A stretch of DNA of 63,437 bases, the filler included, from Hyphochytrium catenoides (lineage: Eukaryota; Protista; Hyphochytriomycota): the NCBI GenBank assembly GCA_900088475.1. It is 5 parts of 5 records of this genome, joined end to end, with 100 filler letters (N's around TTAATTAATTAA, not from the genome) between each part and the next. Parts side by side here need not be neighbours in the genome. Positions count along the whole stretch, not along the records: positions 14,771 to 33,870 come from FLMG01002428.1; 4 more parts are not named here. One strand, given 5' to 3'. A model generated the notes under the pieces. That model was not told where the DNA came from and did not search any database. It was given only the letters and a program-made list of their open reading frames with translations. Positions 15,540 to 33,350 of the stretch are shown piece after piece. How positions within the stretch are numbered: position 1 is the stretch's first letter; every line of letters begins with the position of its first letter. The position numbers were made by a program, and so were the translations under genes.

Positions 15540-15621
15540 TTGGACTTGGACTTGGACTTGGACTTGGACTTGGACTTGGACTTGGACTTGGACTTGGACT
15601 TGGACTTGGACTTGGACTTGG
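15540..15621. repeat. (TTGGAC)n hexanucleotide microsatellite, about 13 units
   Basis: Perfect tandem array, preceded by degenerate gtactt units from ~15503. Confidence 0.95.
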
Positions 15622-16369: not shown

Positions 16370-17980
16370 TTAAGCAGTGACGGGGCCGCAATTGGCGGGG
16401 TCACTGAGGTGAGTCCCAACTGGCGGTAGCTGCTGGGTCAGAGAGATCCAAGACCCTGCATCGCAGTCGCACATGTACGGGCCAGCATTAGGGGGTTGGT
16501 TTCGTCTCTCTCCAGGAAAGGGCCCAGCAGGCTCTGTGTCCCCTTCTTGCGGACAAAACGTAATCTTAAGGCTTCCTCGTGCCGCTACGCCGTTATAATC
16601 AGGGTTGTAAATGTTCTTGACCGCCGTGTCGCATATGTAGTAGGCATCATGGCAGTTAACATGTGTGCAGACAGGCGCATGTGTGCCTGAAGAGGCTCCA
16701 CCGGCCATCCGGTGCTCAATCTTGGCTCCATAGTTAAAGCCCTTCACTTTGCTGATATCGTACCAATATTGACCGCCTTCAACGTTTACCTCCGCTAACG
16801 TCCGGGCAGCCTGGTTCCTACCTGGATAGCCGGTGAGAGATAGCCAGAAGGCCTTACTAAGGCCGTCGATTAGCGTTCTACTAGAGCAGAACTTCCCGTT
16901 CAGACACTGAGAAGGGACAGGAGCGACGTCATTGCCTGCGCCGCCGTAAGAGCCGTAGTAGACTGTCAGGTCGCTGCCGCAATTGTTGACAACTGTGATG
17001 CCTTCCTGCCATGGCTGAGGGGTGGGGGCAGGAGTAGGCGCGGGAGTTGGAGCAGGAGTAGGCGCAGGCGTTGGCGCAGGGGTAGGAGATGGTGTCGGAG
17101 CAGGAGTACGGGTAAAAGCACTTTCCTGCGAAGGCGTTAAGGTTGGAGTAGAAGAAGTATTGTTCGACCCAGACGGAGATTGAGACTCGGTTGAGTGGTT
17201 GTTCCCTGTCGAAGGGGCCACAATGTCCTCTGACTCCACACAATTTGAAGGGAAAGTTTCTTTGGAGCACTTGTCCGGCGTTTCCTTCAGGCATATGAAA
17301 GCAGATGAAGAGCAGCAACGCGCAGCTCCTGCCCTATAGTCCTGGCAGGTGCGAGGCTTTAGGCAAAACCATCGGGTAAAAATGGAGGCTCCGGCTCCCT
17401 CTGCGTCTGGATCCTGACAATACCAGCTGTACCCAGTATTGCAAGTAGGAGGGGCGAGGTTAACATCGCACTCGCTGTAAGAAGAGGCCGCAATACACTG
17501 TCCTTCCTCGCTCTCACTCAGGCAACACTCTACTTCTCTCCTATCCTCCTCCTTGCAACTGCTTTCTGTCATCAGGCACGCTTCCGCCGTCCAGCGATCG
17601 GTGGTTTCTGCCCCTTTGCACTTCCACGTGCCTTTTATGCTGGCAGTCTGGCCGTCTGGATTGGTGTTCCCGGAGAGAGGAATCGGACCGTTCTGCGCCA
17701 AATTCCCAGCGTCAGAGCTACTATCACCTCCACCACCGACAGTGACATAGAGAACCAAGGCAAGCCCAACGACCATCACGCCCCCGACAGCTCCCCAATA
17801 GAGAATTTTACGCCGCCGGCTCCGTGCACTTGGTCTTTCAAGGTCAGCATCGTCCCCATCAAGGGCGTTAGGGAAGGGCTGAACCACGACTCCATAGTAG
17901 TTCAATGTACTGCTTGGCTCATCTCTGGAGGAGATGGAGCCTGAGCTGCTTTTGCGCCTCTGATTTGTAGAGCTCTGCAT
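16370..17980 (-). CDS. Type II membrane protein: two Cys-rich repeats, Pro/Thr stalk and C-terminal thaumatin-like domain
   Basis: Single 536-aa ORF with RRRK followed by a TM segment (ILYWGAVGGVMVVGLALVLYVTV), a (PTPA)n linker and thaumatin motifs ITVVNNC, TLAE, WYDISKVKGFN, CHDAY and LKITFCP. Confidence 0.85.
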   Translation of the reverse strand: MQSSTNQRRKSSSGSISSRDEPSSTLNYYGVVVQPFPNALDGDDADLERPSARSRRRKILYWGAVGGVMVVGLALVLYVTVGGGGDSSSDAGNLAQNGPIPLSGNTNPDGQTASIKGTWKCKGAETTDRWTAEACLMTESSCKEEDRREVECCLSESEEGQCIAASSYSECDVNLAPPTCNTGYSWYCQDPDAEGAGASIFTRWFCLKPRTCQDYRAGAARCCSSSAFICLKETPDKCSKETFPSNCVESEDIVAPSTGNNHSTESQSPSGSNNTSSTPTLTPSQESAFTRTPAPTPSPTPAPTPAPTPAPTPAPTPAPTPQPWQEGITVVNNCGSDLTVYYGSYGGAGNDVAPVPSQCLNGKFCSSRTLIDGLSKAFWLSLTGYPGRNQAARTLAEVNVEGGQYWYDISKVKGFNYGAKIEHRMAGGASSGTHAPVCTHVNCHDAYYICDTAVKNIYNPDYNGVAARGSLKITFCPQEGDTEPAGPFPGERRNQPPNAGPYMCDCDAGSWISLTQQLPPVGTHLSDPANCGPVTA

Positions 17981-19525: not shown

Positions 19526-19939
19526 TTAGGCAGAGGGGTTGGCAGGGTTGTTAGCAATGCACTGAAGAGCATCGCCGCCCTCCATGATGCACTTGCCCTG
19601 GTTAGGGGTAAGGGTAAGGTCAGGGAAGATGGTGGAACCGTAGACCTTGCCGCAAACTGGGAGGGCGCCGCAGTACGCGTAGCAGGTGGCGGCATCAGCG
19701 CCATCGAACTTGAACTCCTCGTCGCCAGGGCAGCTCAGGCAGACATCACGGCCGAGGACAGTGAATGTTGCGTCGCAAGCATCGGTAGGAGCTCCAGCCT
19801 CAAGAATCTCAATCCTTCCAGAGCAGTCAGTGTTGATGGGAGTGTTAGGCTCGCAGGTGGCAGCCAGCCCACGGAAAGGGGAGGCCTCAACGGAGAGGGC
19901 AGCGCCGATAAGAAGAGCGGTGGCAGCGATGAACTTCAT
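19526..19939 (-). CDS. Small secreted Cys-rich protein (137 aa), unknown family
   Basis: Signal peptide MKFIAATALLIGAALSVEA, 10 Cys in the mature part, and a Cys pattern shared with the gene at 23515. Confidence 0.85.
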   Translation of the reverse strand: MKFIAATALLIGAALSVEASPFRGLAATCEPNTPINTDCSGRIEILEAGAPTDACDATFTVLGRDVCLSCPGDEEFKFDGADAATCYAYCGALPVCGKVYGSTIFPDLTLTPNQGKCIMEGGDALQCIANNPANPSA

Positions 19940-20728: not shown

Positions 20729-23514
20729 TCCTCAATCATAGACCTCACAGCATCGTAAGCGTCTAAAAGCAAGTTGGTTCCATGATGTCCATCAGAACCC
20801 TACAATTCTACTCGGGAATTTCCGCCATTCGGCCTGTTAGTGCGTTGGCAGGGCGGCTCCCCGTGTCACAATCAAGCTGTACCTTGCGGTACGAGTCATA
20901 GCAACTAGCACAAAGCTGTTTCTCTTTCATTACCCCTAGTGGTTATCGGAAAGGGAAGATAATTGTATGGCGAGAAGATGAGACTACTACGTTCTTCTTC
21001 CCTCTTCTGGCCTACCCATCTGCTACTACTGTTGCCTTCCCTCGCCTTGAAGATGGCGAATAATACTTGCCCTGCAAGCAAACATCAGCAAGCTCATTTG
21101 CAAGGAATCATCTTCCTACCGAATCTTCACACTGAGAGAGTAAGAAACATCGTTGTTGCATACAATTACTCTGCTAGACCTTGCAACAACAATAAAGCAG
21201 AAAAGCAAGAAGAAAGTGGGACGATGAAATATCAGTTGAAGTTCACAATGTGCATGATGACTCTCTTTTTGTGCTGACGAAACCTTTCTCAGCACTATTT
21301 GACAAGAAGCAACAGAAATGTGAACAAAAACGGAGCACCTATCACTTGCCTCAGGATGGGGAAGGACGCCAGACTTCAGTTGCGTCCAAACTCTTCTCAC
21401 TCTTGTACGGGTACGCGAGTATGTTATCTACAGAGAAGTAGAGAGTGCACAGGAGGGCGGCGGCTTCTTCATGGCGGTTCCCGGTTTATTTTTCTGCGGG
21501 AAGGCAAAGGAGTCAACTCACTCTATGGCTTGAGCTGTCGTGAGCGTGTCATCGGGCAGAAGAGTTATTCTTCTGTCCGACAGATGAGGCGGCGGAGCTT
21601 CAACTGCGGCATGGCCAAAGCGCTCCGCTCCGCAGCCAGCGCGCCAACCGGACCAATAATAACAACAGCAATCCTGTTACCACGCTTGGAAGCCTTGTCG
21701 AACCGGTATATTCGTGCTAATGCCAGTAAGCGGTGAGATACTTGGACAGGTGGCTGCACAAAGGTTTTGTTTTCGGCTAAAGAAGTTCTATCTTCGGTCT
21801 AAATCCCTTTTTCTGGGAACCCACCCTCGCTGTTCCTCTTCAACTGCAGCTCAGGGCCGGCCCCCCAGGGTCAATGGGCGGCTAATGTGTAGAACATAGC
21901 TCCCAATGAACGCTAAATAATCAGCGTTCCTCGGTCTATGATTGGGTCAGCTTGGTCTGCAGCTGTGCGCTGATCGGGCTTGACACTCTCCGCGTCACCG
22001 CGGCCTGGATCCTGGGAAAGGCTAGAGATATCTTTGTTTCTGTGATATCTTTGTTTCACACACTGAAGAAGGAGCTCCATCATCGTCTGCCAGCCTCGGT
22101 CATCGTCTTACCCTCCTAGCTAGCCCAGGCCGAGGGTGAGGGCGAGGCCCGGGCTGCCTTTCAGAAGGAGATGAAGGAAGAGTTGAGGGGCAAGCTAGTG
22201 CCGCACAGAATCGTCGTCCTCACCCCTACCCATTCCTACCCACGAACAATAAGCGCCAATGCTTCTTTTATATTCTACAGCTGTAAGCAGAAAGAAGTTC
22301 CCACCAGACGGAGCTGCCAGTTGAAGAATCATGGTTGTTGATGAGTAGCGGTAAGTACGTCCAACCCAAAGGAAGGCTGAGGCAAGTGATGACTGTCCAA
22401 AAGGTGACCAGAGCAGTGTCAGCGTATCATTGGACGTCTTGGCTTCAACAGTTATTACATCTTCTCTCTCAGCTTCCTTCCTATGTGCTCAAGCAGACCC
22501 AACCCAAAGCTTCATTAATGGCGGCTTTGACAGCAATGCCAGCGTCATTTTATGTTGATACGAATCCTCACTGCAGCCTCCTGCTCTCTAAAGAACCCAA
22601 GTCTCTACAAGGGAATCATTGTTCCCATCTCTCTCTCAATCCTGCATTATTATCTTCCTTACCCCTGTCTTCACCCTGCAGTACGCTGGCTTACTAATAA
22701 TGTGATAGTGTGAAGATTGCGAGGGGAGGTAAGTAGGTAGAGTTGGGTTGGTCAATGATCTGGGGCCTACGATGATGACTTCCAATAGCATTATAATAAC
22801 AGTGCAACGCAGGTACACAGGGTAAATAATGCCCTTGCCCTCTCTCTGCCTTCTCCCTTGTTGTCCGTTTGCCTGCTTGTATGGCCAGTTACGAGGAACT
22901 AGAAAATAGATGAACTAGTGAGGAGGAGTAGCACTATGTGTGCTGCAGTGAGCAATAGAATTAATAGTGCTTGCCGCGCGTAGCTCCTAATATTTGCGTG
23001 GGTCACAGGGAGAGAGAAGGGGTAGCATTTGGACGCAGGCTTCACTTAGGCTGGATAGCAGAGAGCAGGGGCACTGATGTTTGAAGAGAGGGAAATGAAA
23101 ATTTGAGAGGCAGAAAGAAGAATAGCAGCAGCGACTTGGGTTCAAAGAGGATCATTAAAAGTGGGCACAGAGAGAGAGATGATGATGATGACGAGTTATA
23201 GGTGCTTTTGGTGTCTGTTCTCTCCAAGCCTTGCACTGCAGAGGGAAGAAGCAGATCGCCCTACTCCGATTGACTTCGCATCAATATTCTCACATAAACG
23301 ATCACGTACCTCCCATATTTGAGCCTCAGCAATCCTCCCTGCGTCTCTTCCTGAGCAGCCAGTACCTGAAAGTGTAGAAGATATCTTCTGATAATTCTTG
23401 TACAAGGGAGTCTGCTAGCCCCTGCTAGCAGTACCTTGATTGCGGCTCAGATCCCAAACTGCAGTCTTCCCAGCAGCCAGCAAGTGCAGGCTGTCGAAGG
23501 TTAGTTATTTGAAG

Positions 23515-25010
23515 ATGAAGCTATTTCCCGCAGCAGCGGCCATTGTGGCTGCTGCCTTAACGGGTCATGCCGCCGCCCAAGATCTGTGTGCACCTGTAGA
23601 AGACTGCGCAGGGTCAATCCAGGCAATGCCTAAGGGCCTTAAGTGCACTACTCCTTATGGCGCCGTTGGCGAGTTCTTGACAAATTGGGGGGGAGACAAA
23701 CCATCAAAGATCTGCATGCGCTGTCCCACTGGCACGGAAGCCTCGGCGGATGCTGGGAAGTTTCCTTTCTACTCATGCGGCGGTAAAGCCCTATGTGGTC
23801 TGGTTGGCGGGTCCATCACGGGACCTCCTAAGGGTGTCACATTCACTCCCTTCATCCTCCAATGTCTCTTGCAGAATCCCGCAGAGGACGCTTACAAGTG
23901 TTACGAGGCAGCCAGTTCATGCTCTCAGCCCACTGGAGGTCCTGCTCCTGCTCCCACCACTGCCCCTACTGCTGCTCCACCTTCTCCCACTCCAGCTCCT
24001 CCAGTTGACGAGTGCAAGTATGTCAGTGACTGTGCGGGCTCCATCGAAATTGACATGGGTGGGANNNNNNNNNNNNNNNNNNNNNNNNNNNNNNNNNNNN
24101 NNNNNNNNNNNNNNNNNNNNNNNNNNNNNNNNGCATCGCTTGCCTTTCCACATCCTGTCCCGTCACAACCGCCCCTCCTACCGCTCCTACACCGGCTCCT
24201 ACAACTAAGCCTCCAACCCCTACACCCACGGTACCTACCACGAAGCCTCCAACGCCAACCTCTGCTCCTACGCCAAAGCCCACAGTCCGTCCTACTCCTG
24301 CTCCCACTCCAAAGCCCACAGTGACTCCTACTCCAGCACCTACTCCACAACCCACGGCAGCTCCTACCCTGGCACCGACCCCAGCACCCACCTCAGCGGT
24401 CTGTAATACCCAGTGTCTGATTGCCAACTGGCAGCAGGCAGGGTGGGCGTCTGGCCCCACTGCTCCTCCATGCTGGAAGTGGGAGGGAACCTACTACTCG
24501 TGCTTTGACTACGTCAACGGTCGGTGCCAGTGGGCGGGCTTCACAGACTGCGGGGCCATTGCTCCTCCTCAAACTCAGTGCTCAGGGCTGGTGAGGGATG
24601 TGGATCTTTATGGCAATGACATTGGTCAGGTTAACGGCGTGTCGGACGCCGCGCAGTGCTGTGAGCACTGCCGGGATCAGTGTGATATGTTTAGCTGGTC
24701 CGGCTGGCAGGGTGGGACCTGCTTCCTGAAGTCTTCCAAGAGGCACGACGGTGAGGTCCGCAGGGGCAACTGGGGAGTGCACTCGGGTTTCGTAACGCGG
24801 AGGCTAATTAAGGGCATTGACTTCTATGGCAGTGACATTGCCAATGCTCCTTCCTCTTCACCTTCTTCTTGCTTCGACCGGTGCGCACAGAGCCCGGGGT
24901 GCCGTGCCTTCTCTTGGAACGGATACAATGGTGGCACTTGCTGGCTCAAGTCTGGTATTGCCTCTGACCAGATCCGCTCCGCATCAGAGGTCATCTCGGG
25001 CGTCATGTAA
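23515..25010 (+). CDS. Secreted modular protein: at least 2 unknown Cys-rich domains, Pro/Thr linkers, an aromatic Cys module and two PAN/Apple domains
   Basis: Signal peptide [22 protein letters not shown]. The two ORFs are joined across the N-gap 24065-24132. PAN/Apple repeats: [27 protein letters not shown] and [26 protein letters not shown], as in oomycete CBEL-type lectins. Confidence 0.85.
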
Positions 25011-27285: not shown

Positions 27286-30200
27286 ATGGCTCAAGACATA
27301 AAAGCTCTGACTCTTCTCGCTCAGGCGCTCGTCTCTCAGGCTTCCAATCAGCAACTGTCGAAACAGGACCTCGCTACGGCGTTCATTGCAAGCTCTCATC
27401 AAAAGGGCGCAGAAGGATGGCGCGCCTACGAAGAGGCAGGTTATCCGGGCTTGATGGCTGTGCCGGTGCATTTCTCTGGCAAAAAGGATAAGCTTGGGAT
27501 GCCAGAGTTCACGCCAGCTTTCATCGTAGACCCCAATGCCATTCTCCCTGAGATAATGGCCACAAGTTGGGCTTCCAAGGGCAAGGACCCAAAAGCTCTG
27601 ACTGAGGAGCTTCTCGCGACGGCTGCACGCAAGTTTGTAGCGGGTGAGCCGAACCAAGTACTACCGAAGGACCGGCTAGGCGCGTACTTCGCCCTGCTGG
27701 GCCATGGCGTGTATAAGCTGTACAGGTCTATGGGCTTCCCAGGGCTCCTAGAGGAGCCTTTTATGGCAAAGAAAGGGCGCAGATTGCCGGGTGTTAAGCT
27801 CGACCCAACTTGGCGACCAAGCGGCAGAGCCAGTCTGCCTAAATCCAACGGCATCGTCAGACGACCTGATCTCTCAATGTTTCCAGTCATCCCTGCTAGT
27901 TCCTATCCTCCTCCTCCGCAGATGGCCAGCGTCATGGCTCGTGATGGGCTTCATCAAAAGGTAGAGGTATCAATTAGTGAAAGAGACGAAGAAGAAACGA
28001 TTGCGAGTGCTCTGGAGCGCCAGCAGGTGATTTCATCCGAGCCTCTAATCGTCACGCACATTTTGGACGAGCTCTCGGGTGAGAAAGTCCCAGTCTACAG
28101 ACTGGACCATCACACACCTGCTGGGCTTCTCAGTGCCGTAGAGGAGGAACTCCGCAGCTACTCGGAGCTGTCAGTGGACAGTGAGGGAGATATGGAGGTT
28201 GAGGGACAGGAGCGGCTGGATCTCGTCCAAATCCTTGGCTCTGGAGACTCTCCCTTCTTAGGTGAGAAGAAAGGAGAAAGAGAGAACACCAAGAACCACT
28301 ATGAGCGACAGAAAAAGGTGTTTCTCTTTGACATGACTGCTCACTCACCGCAGAAGCCGTTACGAGCTCTCATCTCTCTTCTGCGGCTAGTGCTGGAGAG
28401 GCCTGCGGTGGTGAAGATCTTCCATGACGGCCGAAGTGACCTTTCCGGCCTCTGGAGCTGCTTCGGCATACGAGCGGGCCCTATTTTTGACACTCAAGCG
28501 GTCCATCACAATCTACAATGGCAGGAATCAATCCTGGAAAGGCTCTCGTCCTCCTTCTCCTCTTCTTCTGCGCCTCATTTCAGGGACGAGTTACCTCCTT
28601 CTTCTTCTTTTCGGTCTCAGAGAGTGGCGGCAGAGCACTCGGCTGCTGACGAGAAGCAAGAGGATGGGGACCTCGAAAAAGGAGAACGAAGAAGAGAGAG
28701 AGAGATGCAGGTAAAAAAAGTGAGAAGAGAGATTGCTGAACGGCGCTTTCTGCCTCAGAGCAGACGAGAAATGATTGGCTTGAACAGCCTTCTGCAACGC
28801 TATAACCTGCCGTCCAACCCATTGAAAGAAGCGATGCATGTCCAATTTGAGCAGCTTCAGGATGAGCCAGATAAGGCAGAGAGAGACAGAGAGTGGCGCC
28901 GCCTCGTCTCCAGTCGTACGATGACGATGTACGCTGCACATGATGTCCTTCACTTACAAGAGCTGAAAGAGAGGCTCGAAATGAAGTGGCGGGAGCTGGC
29001 AGGACGCTGGAGCCAGAGCTACTTCTCTCTTTACTCAGATTCTTTAGCTGACGGAGAGAATGCGACAGCGTATGCCGCTGCCCTGGGCCTTCCGTGCGGG
29101 GTCCCTCTTTGCCTCTCCTTCGAGCATCAGCTTGACATGGCGTCTCAATCCGTCGTTTACCTCCCGCGGTACACAGTGCTGCCGCTCTCCTCCAAAGATG
29201 ATGGAACAAGACCAGTGAGGAAAGAAGGAGGGGACGGGCTGGTAGCAAGGGGCAGTCAAGAGATAGTCGATAGAAACGAGATGGAGCCCGAGAGAGAAAA
29301 CAGAAAGGAGGCAGAGTCCGAGGACGGGAAGAGTTTAAGGATGGAGCTGCAGCTCCTAAGAGATGCCGTGAAAATATTTCCCCCGGCTCTTGCCAAGCGT
29401 CTCCTCCAGGCCTCTGAACCGGAAAGCTTAGAGGGGCGGCGGGTGATGGAAATAGTGATGGACTACGGCCGACCTCCCTTCATCAGACTCTCTGACGGCT
29501 CTTCCAAGTTTATTGAGTCCCAGAACCCCCCTCAAGAGGCCATTGAGGTAGAGGGAACCCTTGACAGGGAAACGAAGGCGAGACGCTCTGAAGGTCTCAA
29601 GAATCCGCAGCAGGCAGAGGAAGAGGCACACTGTGTGGCTTTCGACAGCCTTTTACGGCACTTTGAGCTCTTCATGCACCAGGAGAAGCAGCGACGAGGC
29701 GTCGCCCTCTATGAAGCGAAGCTTGAGGAGAAGCCAATCCCTACTCATGAAGGAAATCCAGAGGGAAAGGAAAGACGCCCTGAAGAGGGAAGGACAGAGA
29801 GCGGAAATCGTTTCCGCAGTGAAGTTCCTATTCCTCTCTTCAAAAGTCTGCCAAAGGACCATCGTCTGGGGGTTGCGGGTACTCTGCACCGCCTCAGCTT
29901 CATCCGCGGCCGAAACGCTGAACAGATCCTGGGTCTCACGTTCAGACTTGGCCGCCACATCGAGGGCTCGACCGCCTTGCTCAAAGACTTGATATCCTAC
30001 CTCGGAAGGAAGGAGAGGATTGGCGGCTCTAGACCTTCGTTACTGCTTCTTGGACCTCCTGGTGTAGGTAAGGACGCCAAAGTTGTACTATACTTTTCTG
30101 TCTTCGATCTCTTCTGCCTCTTCTTCTGCTGTGCCACATTTTTTCTAACTCTTTCACGTCCTCCGCAGGCATTTCTTCAATTTGAATCCCTTTTTACGAT

Positions 30201-31583
30201 CTTTGCCCAGCAAGGGCGAGAATAATTATGCGCTTCTTGTCTGTACCACGCTGTCTCTGTCCCTCTGCCTGTTATCGCTGCCCTGCCGCAATGCTCCATT
30301 CACCTCTACCCTACCACGATGACTATGTGAATCTATTCCGCTAACACGTTGTACAGGAAAGACGACTCTCTTGCGGGAAATCACTTCTGAGCTGTCTTCT
30401 CTCTACAATAAGAGCGTAGTAGTGGTGGACACTTCCAATGAGATTGCGGGCGATAGCGACGTGCCTCACAGTTGTATTGGCCGCGCTCGTCGCCTTCAGG
30501 TGCCTGACCCACAAGAACAGCATCGTGTCATGCTTGAAGCCGTCAAGAACCACTGCCCAGATGTGAGAAAGGAACCACTGGCTTCTTCCCTGTTTGCAAA
30601 CTTCTTGGGAGTTCTTCCCGCATATTTCCGTAAACCGACCTCAGTTACATTGCTCATCTCTGTTTTTCATTGTCTCTCGTTTTGTCCTAACCCAGTTGTG
30701 CATTTCTTTGTACTGGCAACTAGAGCTATTTCCACACCTCCATTGTTCTTGCTTCTAAACAAACCCTTGTAGTTCTTAAGCCGGCTGCTTATGGTCATTG
30801 GTGGTGGTGTAGGTTCTGGTCATCGATGAGATTGGAGCAAGTGCAGAGGTCGCGGCCGCCAAGTCCATCGCTAACCGGGGCGTTTCACTTGTGGCGACTG
30901 CCCACGGCTGCAACCTATCAGACCTTCTCCGCAACCCTGAGCTCACAGGACTAGTAGGTGGGTTGCAGCGCGTCATTCTCAGCGCCGCTGAGGCAAAAGA
31001 CCAGCGAGCAACCTCCAAGACGAAGCTCGAGAGAGCTGGGGCGCCAGTTTTCTCCATATTGGTAGAGGTGAGGCAGATACTGATTGAAATAGAGTGATGC
31101 ATTGGCGAGATGGGGGAGAGGTGCGAGGGGTTAAAGAACGAAGACTCTATGCACGGGGGGGGGCCCTTATGTCAGTCCGGCCCTAGTGCTTCCCTTCTTG
31201 GTCCTATCCATTGATTGTCCCTGCCTCTGTAGATGTCACCACTACTTCTGGTGGACTTCACCTCGTGAACAATTAGTACTCGCTGCTTGCTGTCTCTATT
31301 AGCTTGTCAACGATTCCGACAGCCTTTTCGTTAACCATAACTCGTACAGATCTGGGAGAAGAACCACTACTGTATCCACACGAACGTCGCGAGGTCCGTC
31401 GATGCTCTACTGAGCCGAACGAAGAATCTTGCCCGGGTGGAGGCACGATACTTAGAGAGAATGGCGTCTGGCACCAACACCTCGCTGGCGGACACGAAGG
31501 GCGTCATGCGTGCGGTTCTTCAGCCGTCGTTGGGATTAGCGCAGCAAGCACTAGGGGAGATAGATAGACTATTCAGCGGGTGA
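27286..31583 (+). CDS. Fusion protein: two N-terminal repeats, DEDDy 3'-5' exonuclease (EXD1/Egalitarian-like) and Ycf45/SpoIIIAA-family P-loop ATPase; 4 exons
   Basis: Exons 27286-30067, 30357-30562, 30813-31067 and 31350-31583. Exonuclease motifs: VDSEG (ExoI), KIFHDGRSD (ExoII), IFDTQ and YAAHDV (ExoIII). ATPase motifs: [25 protein letters not shown], Walker A GPPGVGKTT split by intron 1, [19 protein letters not shown], Walker [18 protein letters not shown] and [12 protein letters not shown]. Confidence 0.9.
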
Positions 31584-33350
31584 GCGCCACCCCTGTAAAG
31601 CGGTATGATAATAAGGGTGTCCCCATTAGAGTCTATAAGGAGGGGCACATTATTGGAGTTGACTACACCTTTGAGAATGGTTTGGGCATTTCTTGGACTC
31701 GGGATTTCAACTGGCATACAATAGGGTTCGACAAAATGTTACCTAGAGCACTTTATCTCGAAGTTGATTGTGATGAGTTCTACCAGGAAGGCTGAGGGTG
31801 AATGTCAATATCAGAAGCTTGTGATAGAAGACAAAACTAGATAAGAGATACCAAAGGGACTTCGTAACGATGATATTCGCTTTGACTAAGAGTGAGGTAG
31901 GTGTTGAATGCTACAATGCTCTTTGTTAGGAGTACAGTAGTCACTCTCTATACACATCTAGCTCTCAGGGACATAGACATTACGGGTACACCTGTGGTAT
32001 GGGAGAAAGAGGTGTAAGGAGCCGGAGATTTCTTATATGAACTCTTCCTTGCGAACGCCGGAGCACAACAGGAGAGAGAGGTCATGAGGAAAAGCCGGGA
32101 CGAGCAAAGATCTGGAGAGGAGACCATACCGACCGCATCACTCATTCAATGACATCTCATATATCACTACCCAGTCCCTTTGTTATAGTTTCATCTAGAT
32201 TGTGCTCCTACTACAGGAAGCTTCAGGTATTACTATCCAGCTCTGTAAACTCATCAATAGGTCGGCTGCTGTAGATCGTCTGCAGATCTCTGGGCCGTTC
32301 CAGGAACGTTCAGCAGCCCCCTTCCCAATTTCTGCTTTCAACCTTTTTTTTATTAATATAAAAATGTACATTCTCACCACATTTTCTCCATAGTAGCAAT
32401 ATTCAGTAGGTACGTGAGTTAGTGAGAACTTGGTGTGTATAGAGGAGAGTGACTACTTACAACGAACCTTGTAGCGAGCACTCATGCCTTATTATCAGCA
32501 CAATCCTATTTGCATTCTCCATCTAGCAGGGTCCTCCTAAGCTTTATAACATACCTGCTCCGCTGGGTTCTACCAGAGTTTTACTGTGAGATTATTGGAG
32601 GAAACTTATTTTAGTTTACTTCGGTTCGCATACCGGAGTACATACCCTCTGCTGGCTTGCAGGACCTTAGAGCGATTACATAGCCCGGTGAGCTATAGTT
32701 CTAAACAGTATTTATAGTACTCCAAAACCACGAGTTAAGGATGCTCTGCACTTGGCCGCAGCGACAATTGAATAGTCGGCGGCTGGACTGGGCTGAGACT
32801 GTGGTGCGGGCGACGCAGGTTGCGTCCTTCCCCAATAGCATACACAAGGACAGTTGGATCTTCACATATGGGCTTTTACTGTGACTTGGAGCGAGCGGGA
32901 CGTGGGTCGGTAAGACTTGCCGGCTTGCACACACATACCGTTGCCATCAGAGCAACGCAATCAAAGAGCCCACCCACCTTTTGACAACAAGAGCATCTAC
33001 ACGGTTCATGAGCCGTGTTCGATGCTACTGCACCTATCTCGGGCAGGTATTTCATTGTTGCCAGGGCTGCTTTGGTGGCAAAGTGAGTCCGTCACGATTC
33101 ACTCCAAGACCATATGGCAGCAGTAATGACGCCAACTTCACCCAAGCTGTTGTTGGTACGCGAGCCCAGCGGGAATTAGATGTTAAAATCTGTTGGAACA
33201 ATACTAAGAGTGTTCAAATAAAGCTAGTTGCTCGGATTAGGCAGATGTCTTGCAATAAGTTGATTGATGACATACCAAGTGTCTGGTAAATTGTGCATTG
33301 ATGTTTATATGTACTAGATTCTAACTAGATCTACTTCAAACCTGAGAGTA

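Follow-up and report, generated by a model that had tools for sequence, protein, structure and literature searches.

To our knowledge, Ycf45, an ORF long recognised as conserved in plastids and cyanobacteria, has no assigned function. Its canonical form carries an R3H domain that binds single strands of DNA or RNA, and Bacillus SpoIIIAA, the namesake of the Pfam family PF19568 (TIGR02858), has a PilT-like ATPase core and powers a sporulation channel. The exonuclease-homology module of Egalitarian (Egl) and EXD1 has, as far as we know, come up until now only in work on mRNA transport and piRNA biology in animals, where Egl acts as the adaptor between mRNA and BicD and dynein, and EXD1 is a piRNA biogenesis protein of the PET complex. 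A DEDDy or other nuclease is coupled to an NTP-driven motor in WRN (a DEDDy exonuclease with an ATP-driven helicase), in Mtr4/Ski2 with the exosome and in HerA-NurA. Egl binds RNA through its exonuclease-homology domain (PMC13186709; bioRxiv 10.1101/2025.08.03.668247); it retains all five catalytic residues, and mutating them results in no known phenotype (bioRxiv 10.1101/2025.08.03.668247).

Here we describe a locus of Hyphochytrium catenoides, lying in a window (the whole stretch of DNA analysed) of 63,437 nucleotides, filler included, in which small N-terminal repeats, an Egl/EXD1-type exonuclease and a Ycf45/SpoIIIAA-type ATPase are predicted to be joined in a single chain (Table 1). As judged from the sequence, this locus holds a genuine nuclear gene, whose predicted product has 1158 aa. 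Its fusion architecture is already present in the databases, unnamed and unstudied. The H. catenoides gene is one divergent, insert-rich member of the family, and the interest lies in the family rather than in the locus.

Table 1. Predicted features of the H. catenoides locus (positions in the window; a slash marks a splice junction)
Feature	Position	Strand	Details
Exon 1	27286..30067	+	aa 1-927 and first base of codon 928; N-terminal repeat, exonuclease, linker, Ycf45 N-domain, first half of Walker A; donor G/GTAAGG
Repeat unit 1	27292..27555	+	aa 3-90; predicted helix-helix-helix-strand-strand, possibly winged helix (low-confidence models)
Repeat unit 2	27580..27855	+	aa 99-190; 34% identical to unit 1
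DEDDy 3'-5' exonuclease domain, Egalitarian/EXD1-like	28066..29010	+	aa 261-575
ExoI, D298-S-E300 (VDSEG)	28177..28185	+	E300 invariant, D298 at least 90% conserved (32 family members)
ExoII, H380-D-G-R-S-D385	28423..28440	+	H380 invariant; D381 and D385 at least 90% conserved (32 members)
ExoIII, Y549-A-A-H-D553	28930..28944	+	Y549 invariant, D553 at least 90% conserved (32 members)
Ycf45/SpoIIIAA N-terminal domain, with inserts	29341..30003	+	aa 686-906; Foldseek match to residues 5-123 of plastid Ycf45 P49540
Walker A, first half (G923-P-P-G-V and first base of G928)	30052..30067	+	reached by the exon 1 ORF (GPPGV-G)
Intron 1	30068..30356	+	289 nt, GT-AG, phase 1, dividing P-loop codon G928; G/GTAAGG...ACAG/; 2 indel differences between DNA runs
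Exon 2	30357..30562	+	completes Walker A (G-K929-T930); DTSNEIAGD and GRARRLQV motifs
Intron 2	30563..30812	+	250 nt, GT-AG, phase 0; GAT/GTGAGA...GTAG/; 1 indel and 9 SNPs
Exon 3	30813..31067	+	Walker B VLVIDEIG (D1001, E1002); ATAHG motif
Intron 3	31068..31349	+	282 nt, GT-AG, phase 0; GAG/GTGAGG...ACAG/; 2 indels
Exon 4	31350..31583	+	end of ATPase core (to aa ~1115), 43-aa tail, stop codon 31581-31583

Domain composition of the predicted protein

An EXD1/Egalitarian-type exonuclease with a complete DEDDy active site had been proposed in a preliminary description of the locus, and both points were borne out: D298, E300, D385, Y549 and D553 are all there, and Egl was the best match of the domain both in the PDB by sequence (E 7.7e-12) and by predicted fold (Egl ExoHD, VIA Z 19.2, 199 residues aligned, 31% identity). 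Pfam searching detected PF01612 (DNA_pol_A_exo1; E 1.8e-11) with a score of 44.6 bits, the cut-off being 23.6; the match is confined to profile positions 49-116, because two low-complexity inserts (aa ~321-341 and ~413-489) break up the domain. The exonuclease core was modelled by AF2 with a pLDDT of 80-95, and the model suggests an RNase H-like exonuclease fold, with Z scores of 16-19 to the exonuclease domains of Egl, RNase D, Rrp6, WRN and Klenow. In BLASTP, an egalitarian homolog from a wasp was 37% identical, and the sole match of the exonuclease in a large word-indexed protein database was an 'egalitarian protein homolog'; the whole of exon 1 as query in the word-indexed search gave no match, probably because low-complexity words swamped the query, but relatives were found by an exhaustive HMMER search and by region-restricted searches. 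The next-closest relatives of the domain are the RNA enzymes EXD1, RNase D, Rrp6 and NrnC. What is new is the specific resemblance of this exonuclease to Egalitarian, seen in the sequence and in the modelled fold alike.

Comparison with the described proteins showed that Drosophila Egl and its insect and nematode homologs (PF23713 WH_Egal plus PF01612) carry the closest exonuclease domain. Egl and the H. catenoides protein both have the full DEDDy signature, and in Egl as in the fusion family the exonuclease is preceded by small helical repeats, winged-helix in Egl and probably so in the family. However, Egl has no ATPase, and its exonuclease-adjacent helical domain (XAD) found no match past the ExoIII helix, the structural alignments ending at aa 572-574, which corresponds to Egl 729-731. 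EXD1 was the top Swiss-Prot AlphaFold match (E 1.9e-7) and has the same DEDDy-like fold (PDB 5fis/5fiq, Z ~18), at an identity of just 12-15%. It also lacks an ATPase, and its domain has been described as inactive and exonuclease-like (bioRxiv 10.1101/2025.08.03.668247), whereas the H. catenoides protein has all of the catalytic residues.

The repeat noted earlier within the single chain proved to be real, as aa 3-90 and 99-190 aligned with a z of 9.2 and none of 500 shuffles scored as high. Since the repeat begins at residue 3, there is no space for a long N-terminal leader. Structural models of the repeats are unreliable (pLDDT 40 for AF2 on the single sequence; below 60, range about 40-58, for the alignment-based model), and language-model features gave OST-HTH and WHD_Egal as leads for unit 1 with scores below 0.85 only. 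No match to the H. catenoides repeats was obtained in Pfam at E <= 1, LOTUS/OST-HTH (PF12872) and WH_Egal included, and a PDB search with them had no match, no LOTUS chain being found there by phmmer and profile searches. They were not linked by jackhmmer to the repeats of relatives, and hhalign matched them neither to those repeats nor to an Egl homolog; unlike the repeats of Egl, they are not demonstrably WH_Egal. In the relatives, four of eight repeat units matched WH_Egal (PF23713) below threshold (best E 0.007), hhalign of these units with ED1 of the wasp Egl homolog gave an E of 0.005, and one relative scored 21 bits against PF12872 (cut-off 23.8, E 3e-4); a profile of the relatives' repeats found no LOTUS chain in the PDB. 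The one or two small N-terminal helical repeats of the family are probably winged-helix nucleic-acid-binding modules.

The assignment of the ATPase to the Ycf45/SpoIIIAA type was upheld. Pfam was run on the separate exons, exon 3 by itself scoring 26.8 bits against PF19568 (cut-off 27, E 3.4e-6), and the spliced product was compared by offline BLAST and HMMER, showing 53% identity to bacterial Ycf45-type proteins over 245 aa (E ~1e-78) with no gaps at the junctions. Motifs found family-wide in the N-domain (23 protein letters not shown) are conserved in the H. catenoides protein. N-domain and core are 47-53% identical to canonical Ycf45, bacterial 'R3H domain-containing' AAA ATPases and plant SEEDLING PLASTID DEVELOPMENT 1-like proteins, with PF19568, a shared motif (14 protein letters not shown), hhhhDEIG and ATAHG in common. 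However, canonical forms end in PF25516 and R3H (PF01424) and have no exonuclease, and the H. catenoides protein shows the reverse. In agreement with the earlier reading that R3H is missing, no Pfam R3H match was found in the 43-aa tail after the ATPase, and PF25516 and R3H are also absent from the precomputed domain lists of fused relatives. In the ATPase tree, which was built by a quick method and has many long branches, all 38 fused forms fell outside the canonical bacterial and plant clade (SH-aLRT 95). The nearest solved structure to the ATPase was PilT (E 7e-5), and NCBIfam placed the ATPase near the ComGA and TadA pilus ATPases. Relatives scored 71-91 bits against the SpoIIIAA equivalog cut-off of 281, so they are not SpoIIIAA equivalogs, and the sporulation channel has no counterpart in the fusion family.

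A eukaryotic family with the same fusion

HMMER searching found 195 relatives at E <= 1e-3, and the exonuclease and the full ATPase core occur together in at least 38 database proteins. The combination of PF01612 and PF19568 was confirmed in most members scanned, among them those of Synchytrium, Chytridiales sp., Planoprotostelium, Micractinium, Myrmecia and Chlorokybus; Parachlorella and Balamuthia gave partial models, and Amoeba proteus and Physarum contributed transcript-derived ORFs of the family. The fusion extends over Amoebozoa, chytrid fungi, chlorophytes and Chlorokybus, with several members known from transcriptomes. The layout runs from the repeats to the Egalitarian/EXD1-type exonuclease, a short conserved linker, and the Ycf45 N-domain with a PilT-like RecA core. 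Across 32 members with an overall identity of 21-28%, the P-loop and every DEDDy residue are either without variation or conserved to at least 90%. One Chlorokybus paralogue has an extra CCCH zinc finger (PF00642).

The preliminary description had cautioned that the architecture might already be annotated, and the labels of all the fused proteins are 'hypothetical' or 'AAA+ ATPase domain-containing'. It had also known of no functional description; none was found in the literature, and no paper was found to connect Ycf45/SpoIIIAA with either an exonuclease or Egalitarian. The family is widespread in eukaryotes, unnamed and uncharacterised. It places the Egl/EXD1 module in amoebae, chytrids and green algae, joined to a motor and with its active site conserved, and is relevant to the retention in Egl of catalytic residues that are dispensable for the known function of Egl.

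Proposed function and alternative readings

The explanation that we favour overall, and hold to be somewhat probable, is that the gene belongs to an uncharacterised family acting as an ATP-driven, probably oligomeric, RNA 3'-end nuclease. By remote similarity to PilT-class ATPases, the ATPase may form a ring; it would spend ATP on holding, remodelling or feeding structured RNA or RNP substrates, whose 3' ends would be trimmed or degraded at the attached two-metal DEDDy site, and the N-terminal repeats may contribute to recognition of substrate or partner. That modules for nucleic-acid binding and nuclease action stand in place of the canonical R3H is an argument for the Ycf45 ATPase itself acting on nucleic acid. 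This natural fusion is strong "guilt by fusion" for an action of the Ycf45 ATPase on RNA or DNA, and it offers a direct assay. RNA is preferred over DNA as substrate because the Egl domain binds RNA and because of the CCCH finger in the Chlorokybus paralogue. The coupling of nuclease and motor may follow a functional logic like that of WRN, Mtr4/Ski2 with the exosome and HerA-NurA; those motors are SF2 helicases or HerA/FtsK, in contrast to the PilT/Ycf45-like motor here, and there is no homology beyond the exonuclease fold.

The same protein might instead act on DNA, as a nuclease-motor for repair, replication or organelle-genome maintenance with a WRN-like logic. DNA proofreading and repair nucleases are among the DEDDy domains of the PF01612 family, the modelled fold matched the proofreading exonuclease of the apicoplast DNA polymerase with a Z of 19.0 and the Klenow and WRN exonucleases with a Z of ~16, relatives gave weak NCBIfam matches to 'bifunctional 3'-5' exonuclease/DNA polymerase', and the R3H of canonical Ycf45 accepts either nucleic acid. 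Sequence identity, however, is clearly highest to the RNA-binding Egl (31-37%, versus 14-24% for the DNA enzymes), and both the run of RNA enzymes among the next relatives and the Chlorokybus zinc finger also speak against action on DNA, which we consider unlikely.

Alternatively, the exonuclease could serve as a non-catalytic RNA-binding adaptor, as in Egl and EXD1, and the protein could use ATP to remodel or transport RNA or RNPs. The Egl domain clasps double-stranded RNA stems, and an Egl mutant in all five catalytic residues keeps its known function (bioRxiv 10.1101/2025.08.03.668247), so that an intact DEDDy site is no proof that the activity matters; the inactive domain of EXD1 and the Egl-like winged-helix repeats in relatives point the same way. 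Nevertheless, five (near-)invariant DEDDy residues across 32 very divergent members are hard to explain without catalysis, and we regard an adaptor role as rather unlikely.

A more far-reaching reading, which we consider improbable, would take the family as the ancestral, enzymatically complete Egl/EXD1 module. Early eukaryotes would then have had a machine for RNA 3' ends whose PilT-like Ycf45 ATPase ring fed structured RNA to covalently attached DEDDy nucleases under the guidance of LOTUS-like winged helices. Animals would have kept the RNA-binding front end only (Egl, EXD1), and the Ycf45-R3H proteins of plastids and bacteria would correspond to the motor of such a machine working alone. 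In that case a testable role, that of a nucleic-acid motor, could be assigned to Ycf45, a plastid ORF that is conserved but 'hypothetical'. A role in defence, which had been put forward earlier as one possibility, received no support, as PADLOC gave no match for exon 1 and just generic P-loop matches of 35-100 residues for relatives.

Gene model and splicing

The gene model, drawn from DNA alone, comprises four GT-AG exons on the + strand that yield a 3477-nt CDS with one terminal stop and otherwise free of stops; the ATG is preceded, at a distance of 8 codons, by an in-frame stop. The Walker motifs are intact after splicing, as had been stated before, Walker A (GPPGVGKT) being joined from the two sides of intron 1 and Walker B (VLVIDEIG) opening exon 3. 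An Rfam search of the 27286-31583 piece gave no match.

It is very improbable, and already contradicted by the sequence evidence, that an exonuclease gene and an adjacent Ycf45 ATPase gene were misread as one: although the H. catenoides protein is longer than its relatives and carries low-complexity inserts, the ORF at 27286..30225 is uninterrupted from the exonuclease motifs via the Ycf45 N-domain to GPPGV-G, independent contigs from two public DNA runs (28223-29558 and 27995-29661) span the exonuclease/N-domain join, the domain order is identical in 38 database proteins, including single transcripts of other species, and the sole GT..AG pairs that could hide in-frame introns behind the exon 1 inserts are ~50 nt long and would disrupt the frame. 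The earlier argument that one exon holds the fusion, which is then no artefact of the gene model, is sustained. A further DNA contig (29873-30667) joins exon 1, intron 1 and exon 2. All five indel differences between the DNA runs lie inside predicted introns, and SNP density is three-fold lower in exons (23 in 3477 exonic versus 17 in 821 intronic positions), the ratio of synonymous to nonsynonymous SNPs between the runs being 11:12.

Gene structure and splicing

The stop-free plus-strand open reading frame (ORF) that begins the gene runs from a tandem N-terminal repeat through a DEDDy exonuclease and a linker to the N-domain of a Ycf45/SpoIIIAA-type ATPase, as far as GPPGV-G, beyond which it enters intron-like pyrimidine-rich sequence. 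Because this ORF is stop-free across both domains, the claim of the preliminary description that the exonuclease and the start of the ATPase share one uninterrupted first exon was upheld. Three GT-AG introns link exon 1 to three further exons, and the spliced coding sequence of 3477 nt, whose sole stop is terminal, is translated into 1158 aa. The ATG has an in-frame stop 8 codons upstream, and the first repeat starts at residue 3, leaving no room for a long N-terminal leader.

The spliced ATPase showed 53% identity to bacterial Ycf45-type ATPases over 245 residues (E ~1e-78), and the splice model draws its strongest support from the fact that this alignment is gap-free at every exon junction. 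Walker A (GPPGVGKT), interrupted by intron 1 within codon G928, and Walker B (VLVIDEIG) are both intact in the spliced product, as had been stated before. The two low-complexity inserts in the exonuclease domain were rejected as hidden introns, the GT..AG pairs there being only ~50 nt apart and frame-breaking. Among the public sequencing runs listed, two DNA runs and no RNA run contained this stretch. In contigs of the two DNA runs, all five indel differences fell inside predicted introns (19% of the length), and SNP differences numbered 23 in 3477 exonic nt (11 synonymous, 12 nonsynonymous) versus 17 in 821 intronic nt. This distribution is as expected if the gene is coding and its exons are bounded as in the model. 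In addition, three SNP/indel clusters were present at about half the local depth in both runs (X1 and X2), which points to either two haplotypes (a heterozygous diploid) or a mixture of strains in the DNA that was sequenced.

Coordinates of the fusion gene and of other features in the window
Feature	Position	Strand	Remarks
Exon 1	27286-30067	+	Followed by intron 1, 289 nt
Exon 2	30357-30562	+	Followed by intron 2, 250 nt
Exon 3	30813-31067	+	Followed by intron 3, 282 nt
Exon 4	31350-31583	+	
Stop-free ORF	27286-30225	+	
DNA-run contigs	28223-29558; 27995-29661		Exonuclease to Ycf45 N-domain
DNA-run contig	29873-30667		Spans exon 1, intron 1 and exon 2
SNP/indel clusters	29801-29872; 30668-30726; 31192-31256		
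Microsatellite	15540-15621		Perfect hexanucleotide, (TTGGAC) x 13.7
Cys-rich ORF	16370-17980	-	Uninterrupted, 536 aa, (PTPA)n linker; no Pfam family found
Tandem repeat	17028-17108		12/24/36 nt, in the 536-aa ORF
Small Cys-rich ORFs	19526-19939; 23512-24030	-; +	Signal-like hydrophobic N-termini; no Pfam match for either
ORF upstream of PAN/apple ORF	23440-24324	+	
Assembly gap	24065-24132		68 N
Tandem repeat	24262-24371		36 nt
PAN/apple ORF	24321-25010	+	Two domains; PF14295 E 4.8e-14, PF00024 E 6.1e-12
Small ORF	31580-31795	+	71 aa, GTG start; no Pfam match

The exonuclease domain and the N-terminal repeats

All of the DEDDy motifs named earlier were found in the translation, as VDSEG (D298, E300), HDGRSD (H380-D385) and YAAHD (Y549, D553), and Pfam detected PF01612 in exon 1 with 44.6 bits against a cut-off of 23.6. 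The sequence comparison with solved structures placed Drosophila Egalitarian (Egl), an mRNA-transport protein, at the top (E 7.7e-12), with NrnC (7.8e-5) and Rrp6 (0.04) far behind, and the top eight Foldseek matches of the exonuclease fold were all Egl-BicD-RNA complexes. VIA-align superposed the domain on Egl residues 520-729 with Z 19.2 (199 residues aligned, 31% identical), whereas other DEDDy domains gave similar Z at just 14-24% identity. The proposed EXD1/Egalitarian-type assignment thus agrees with the best match by both sequence and fold. Furthermore, a region-restricted search of a 5.8-billion-protein index returned a single match, a wasp "egalitarian protein homolog" (PF01612 + PF23713), with 37% identity across ExoI-ExoII and 34% across ExoIII.

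Recent structural work divides Egl into three LOTUS-like winged-helix "Egl domains", then the exonuclease-homology domain, then a helical domain adjacent to it (PMC13186709). Egl itself keeps D561, E563, D621, Y704 and D708, although their mutation has no known effect (bioRxiv 10.1101/2025.08.03.668247). The N-terminal repeat of the window protein is real (residues 3-90 versus 99-190, z = 9.2, a value reached by none of 500 shuffles). The repeats are predicted, in low-confidence models, as helix-helix-helix-strand-strand, and language-model leads pointed to OST-HTH (LOTUS) and WHD_Egal clusters with scores all below the 0.85 level; hhalign and HMM searches connected them to no family or relative. 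N-terminal units are homologous among the Amoeba, its metagenomic relative, Chlorokybus and Balamuthia family members. WH_Egal was the sole Pfam family matched by four of eight such units (best E 0.007), a profile of the units matched the wasp homolog's first Egl domain (hhalign E 0.005), and one further relative gave a sub-threshold OST-HTH match (E 3e-4). An Egl-like front end is therefore likely at the level of the family only, the window protein's own repeats not being linked to it.

The ATPase domain and the fused family

Residues 686-906 gave a fold match to the N-domain of plastid Ycf45. No solved structure was found within the Ycf45-type ATPase family, the closest by sequence being PilT (E 7e-5), and NCBIfam returned a spore_III_AA match far under the equivalog cut-off and weak matches to the pilus ATPases ComGA and TadA. 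The 43-aa tail past the ATPase core had no R3H match, in line with the initial reading. Canonical bacterial and plant Ycf45 proteins (SPD1-like) carry PF19568, PF25516 and R3H without an exonuclease, so that between these and the fused family R3H is swapped for an exonuclease front end. A quick maximum-likelihood tree built on the ATPase core, unrooted and with long branches, placed canonical Ycf45 in a clade (SH-aLRT 95) that excluded all 38 fused forms.

Used as the query of an exhaustive HMMER search, exon 1 recovered 195 relatives at E <= 1e-3, none close (top E 2.5e-22). The full ATPase core and the exonuclease occur together in at least 38 database proteins, and Pfam found PF01612 + PF19568 in most members scanned. 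Carriers include chlorophytes (Parachlorella, partial model; Micractinium; Myrmecia), the streptophyte alga Chlorokybus (two copies), chytrids (Synchytrium microbalum, Chytridiales sp. JEL 0842) and Amoebozoa (Planoprotostelium; Balamuthia, partial model), and transcript-derived ORFs of Amoeba proteus and Physarum polycephalum also contain the fusion. Among the more compact orthologs are P0005 (792 aa), XP_031025123 from Synchytrium and PRP75988 from Planoprotostelium. One Chlorokybus copy (P0163, 1037 aa) has an extra N-terminal CCCH zinc finger (PF00642), and two green-algal-type relatives (P0170 and P0172, 1230-1288 aa) have N-terminal extensions of >450 aa ahead of the exonuclease. Across 32 members, each only 21-28% identical to the window protein, E300, H380, D402, Y549, D298, D381, D385, D553 and the P-loop were invariant or at least 90% conserved.

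Maruyama et al. 2009 (PMC3087521) reported that Phytophthora ramorum and Naegleria gruberi, both of which lack plastids, have YCF45 homologs descended from cyanobacteria, with the function given as "unknown". The literature search returned no paper naming Ycf45 together with an exonuclease, none of the ranked results linked either SpoIIIAA or Ycf45 to an exonuclease or to Egalitarian, and the architecture is absent from the list in the OST-HTH founding paper. Same-span AlphaFold DB cluster representatives bear only the names "AAA+ ATPase domain-containing protein" or "Ycf45 protein". The fused family is therefore in databases, as had been allowed for, yet unnamed and unstudied, and its Egalitarian connection is, as far as could be found, undescribed. 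The individual parts are of known kinds; their combination is a new variation on them.

Proposed activity and neighbouring features

What is established for the window protein is how its domains are ordered, that its two-metal DEDDy site and its Walker A and B motifs are intact, that the other conserved ATPase motifs of the family are present, and that conservation is family-wide. The ATPase may oligomerise as PilT-class ATPases do, its ATP turnover would drive RNA binding, remodelling or feeding, the tethered exonuclease would trim or degrade the RNA 3' end, and the N-terminal repeats may recognise substrates or partners. As a whole, this scheme of an oligomeric ATPase coupled to an RNA 3'-end exonuclease, with repeats as recognition modules, is the reading that we hold to be somewhat probable. 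DNA as the substrate of the fusion protein is unlikely. About as improbable is that the protein is an RNA adaptor of the Egl kind, non-catalytic and coupled to a motor. An artefact is very hard to credit, with contigs of two DNA runs spanning the join. The suggested defence role received no support from PADLOC.

Elsewhere in the window, the PAN/apple ORF follows a linker region rich in Pro/Thr/Ala and a tandem repeat, and its gene model is uncertain because the assembly gap breaks the upstream ORF. The two small Cys-rich ORFs are paralogs of each other, 30% identical across 107 aa (E 1.4e-6), and may represent a local secreted-protein family. The microsatellite encodes SP or KS dipeptide runs in overlapping minus-strand ORFs. 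Downstream of the fusion gene, G+C falls to 0.44-0.47, and the 71-aa ORF, which is not low-complexity and starts in another frame at the fusion gene's stop codon, may have arisen by chance or belong, as an exon, to a gene further downstream.
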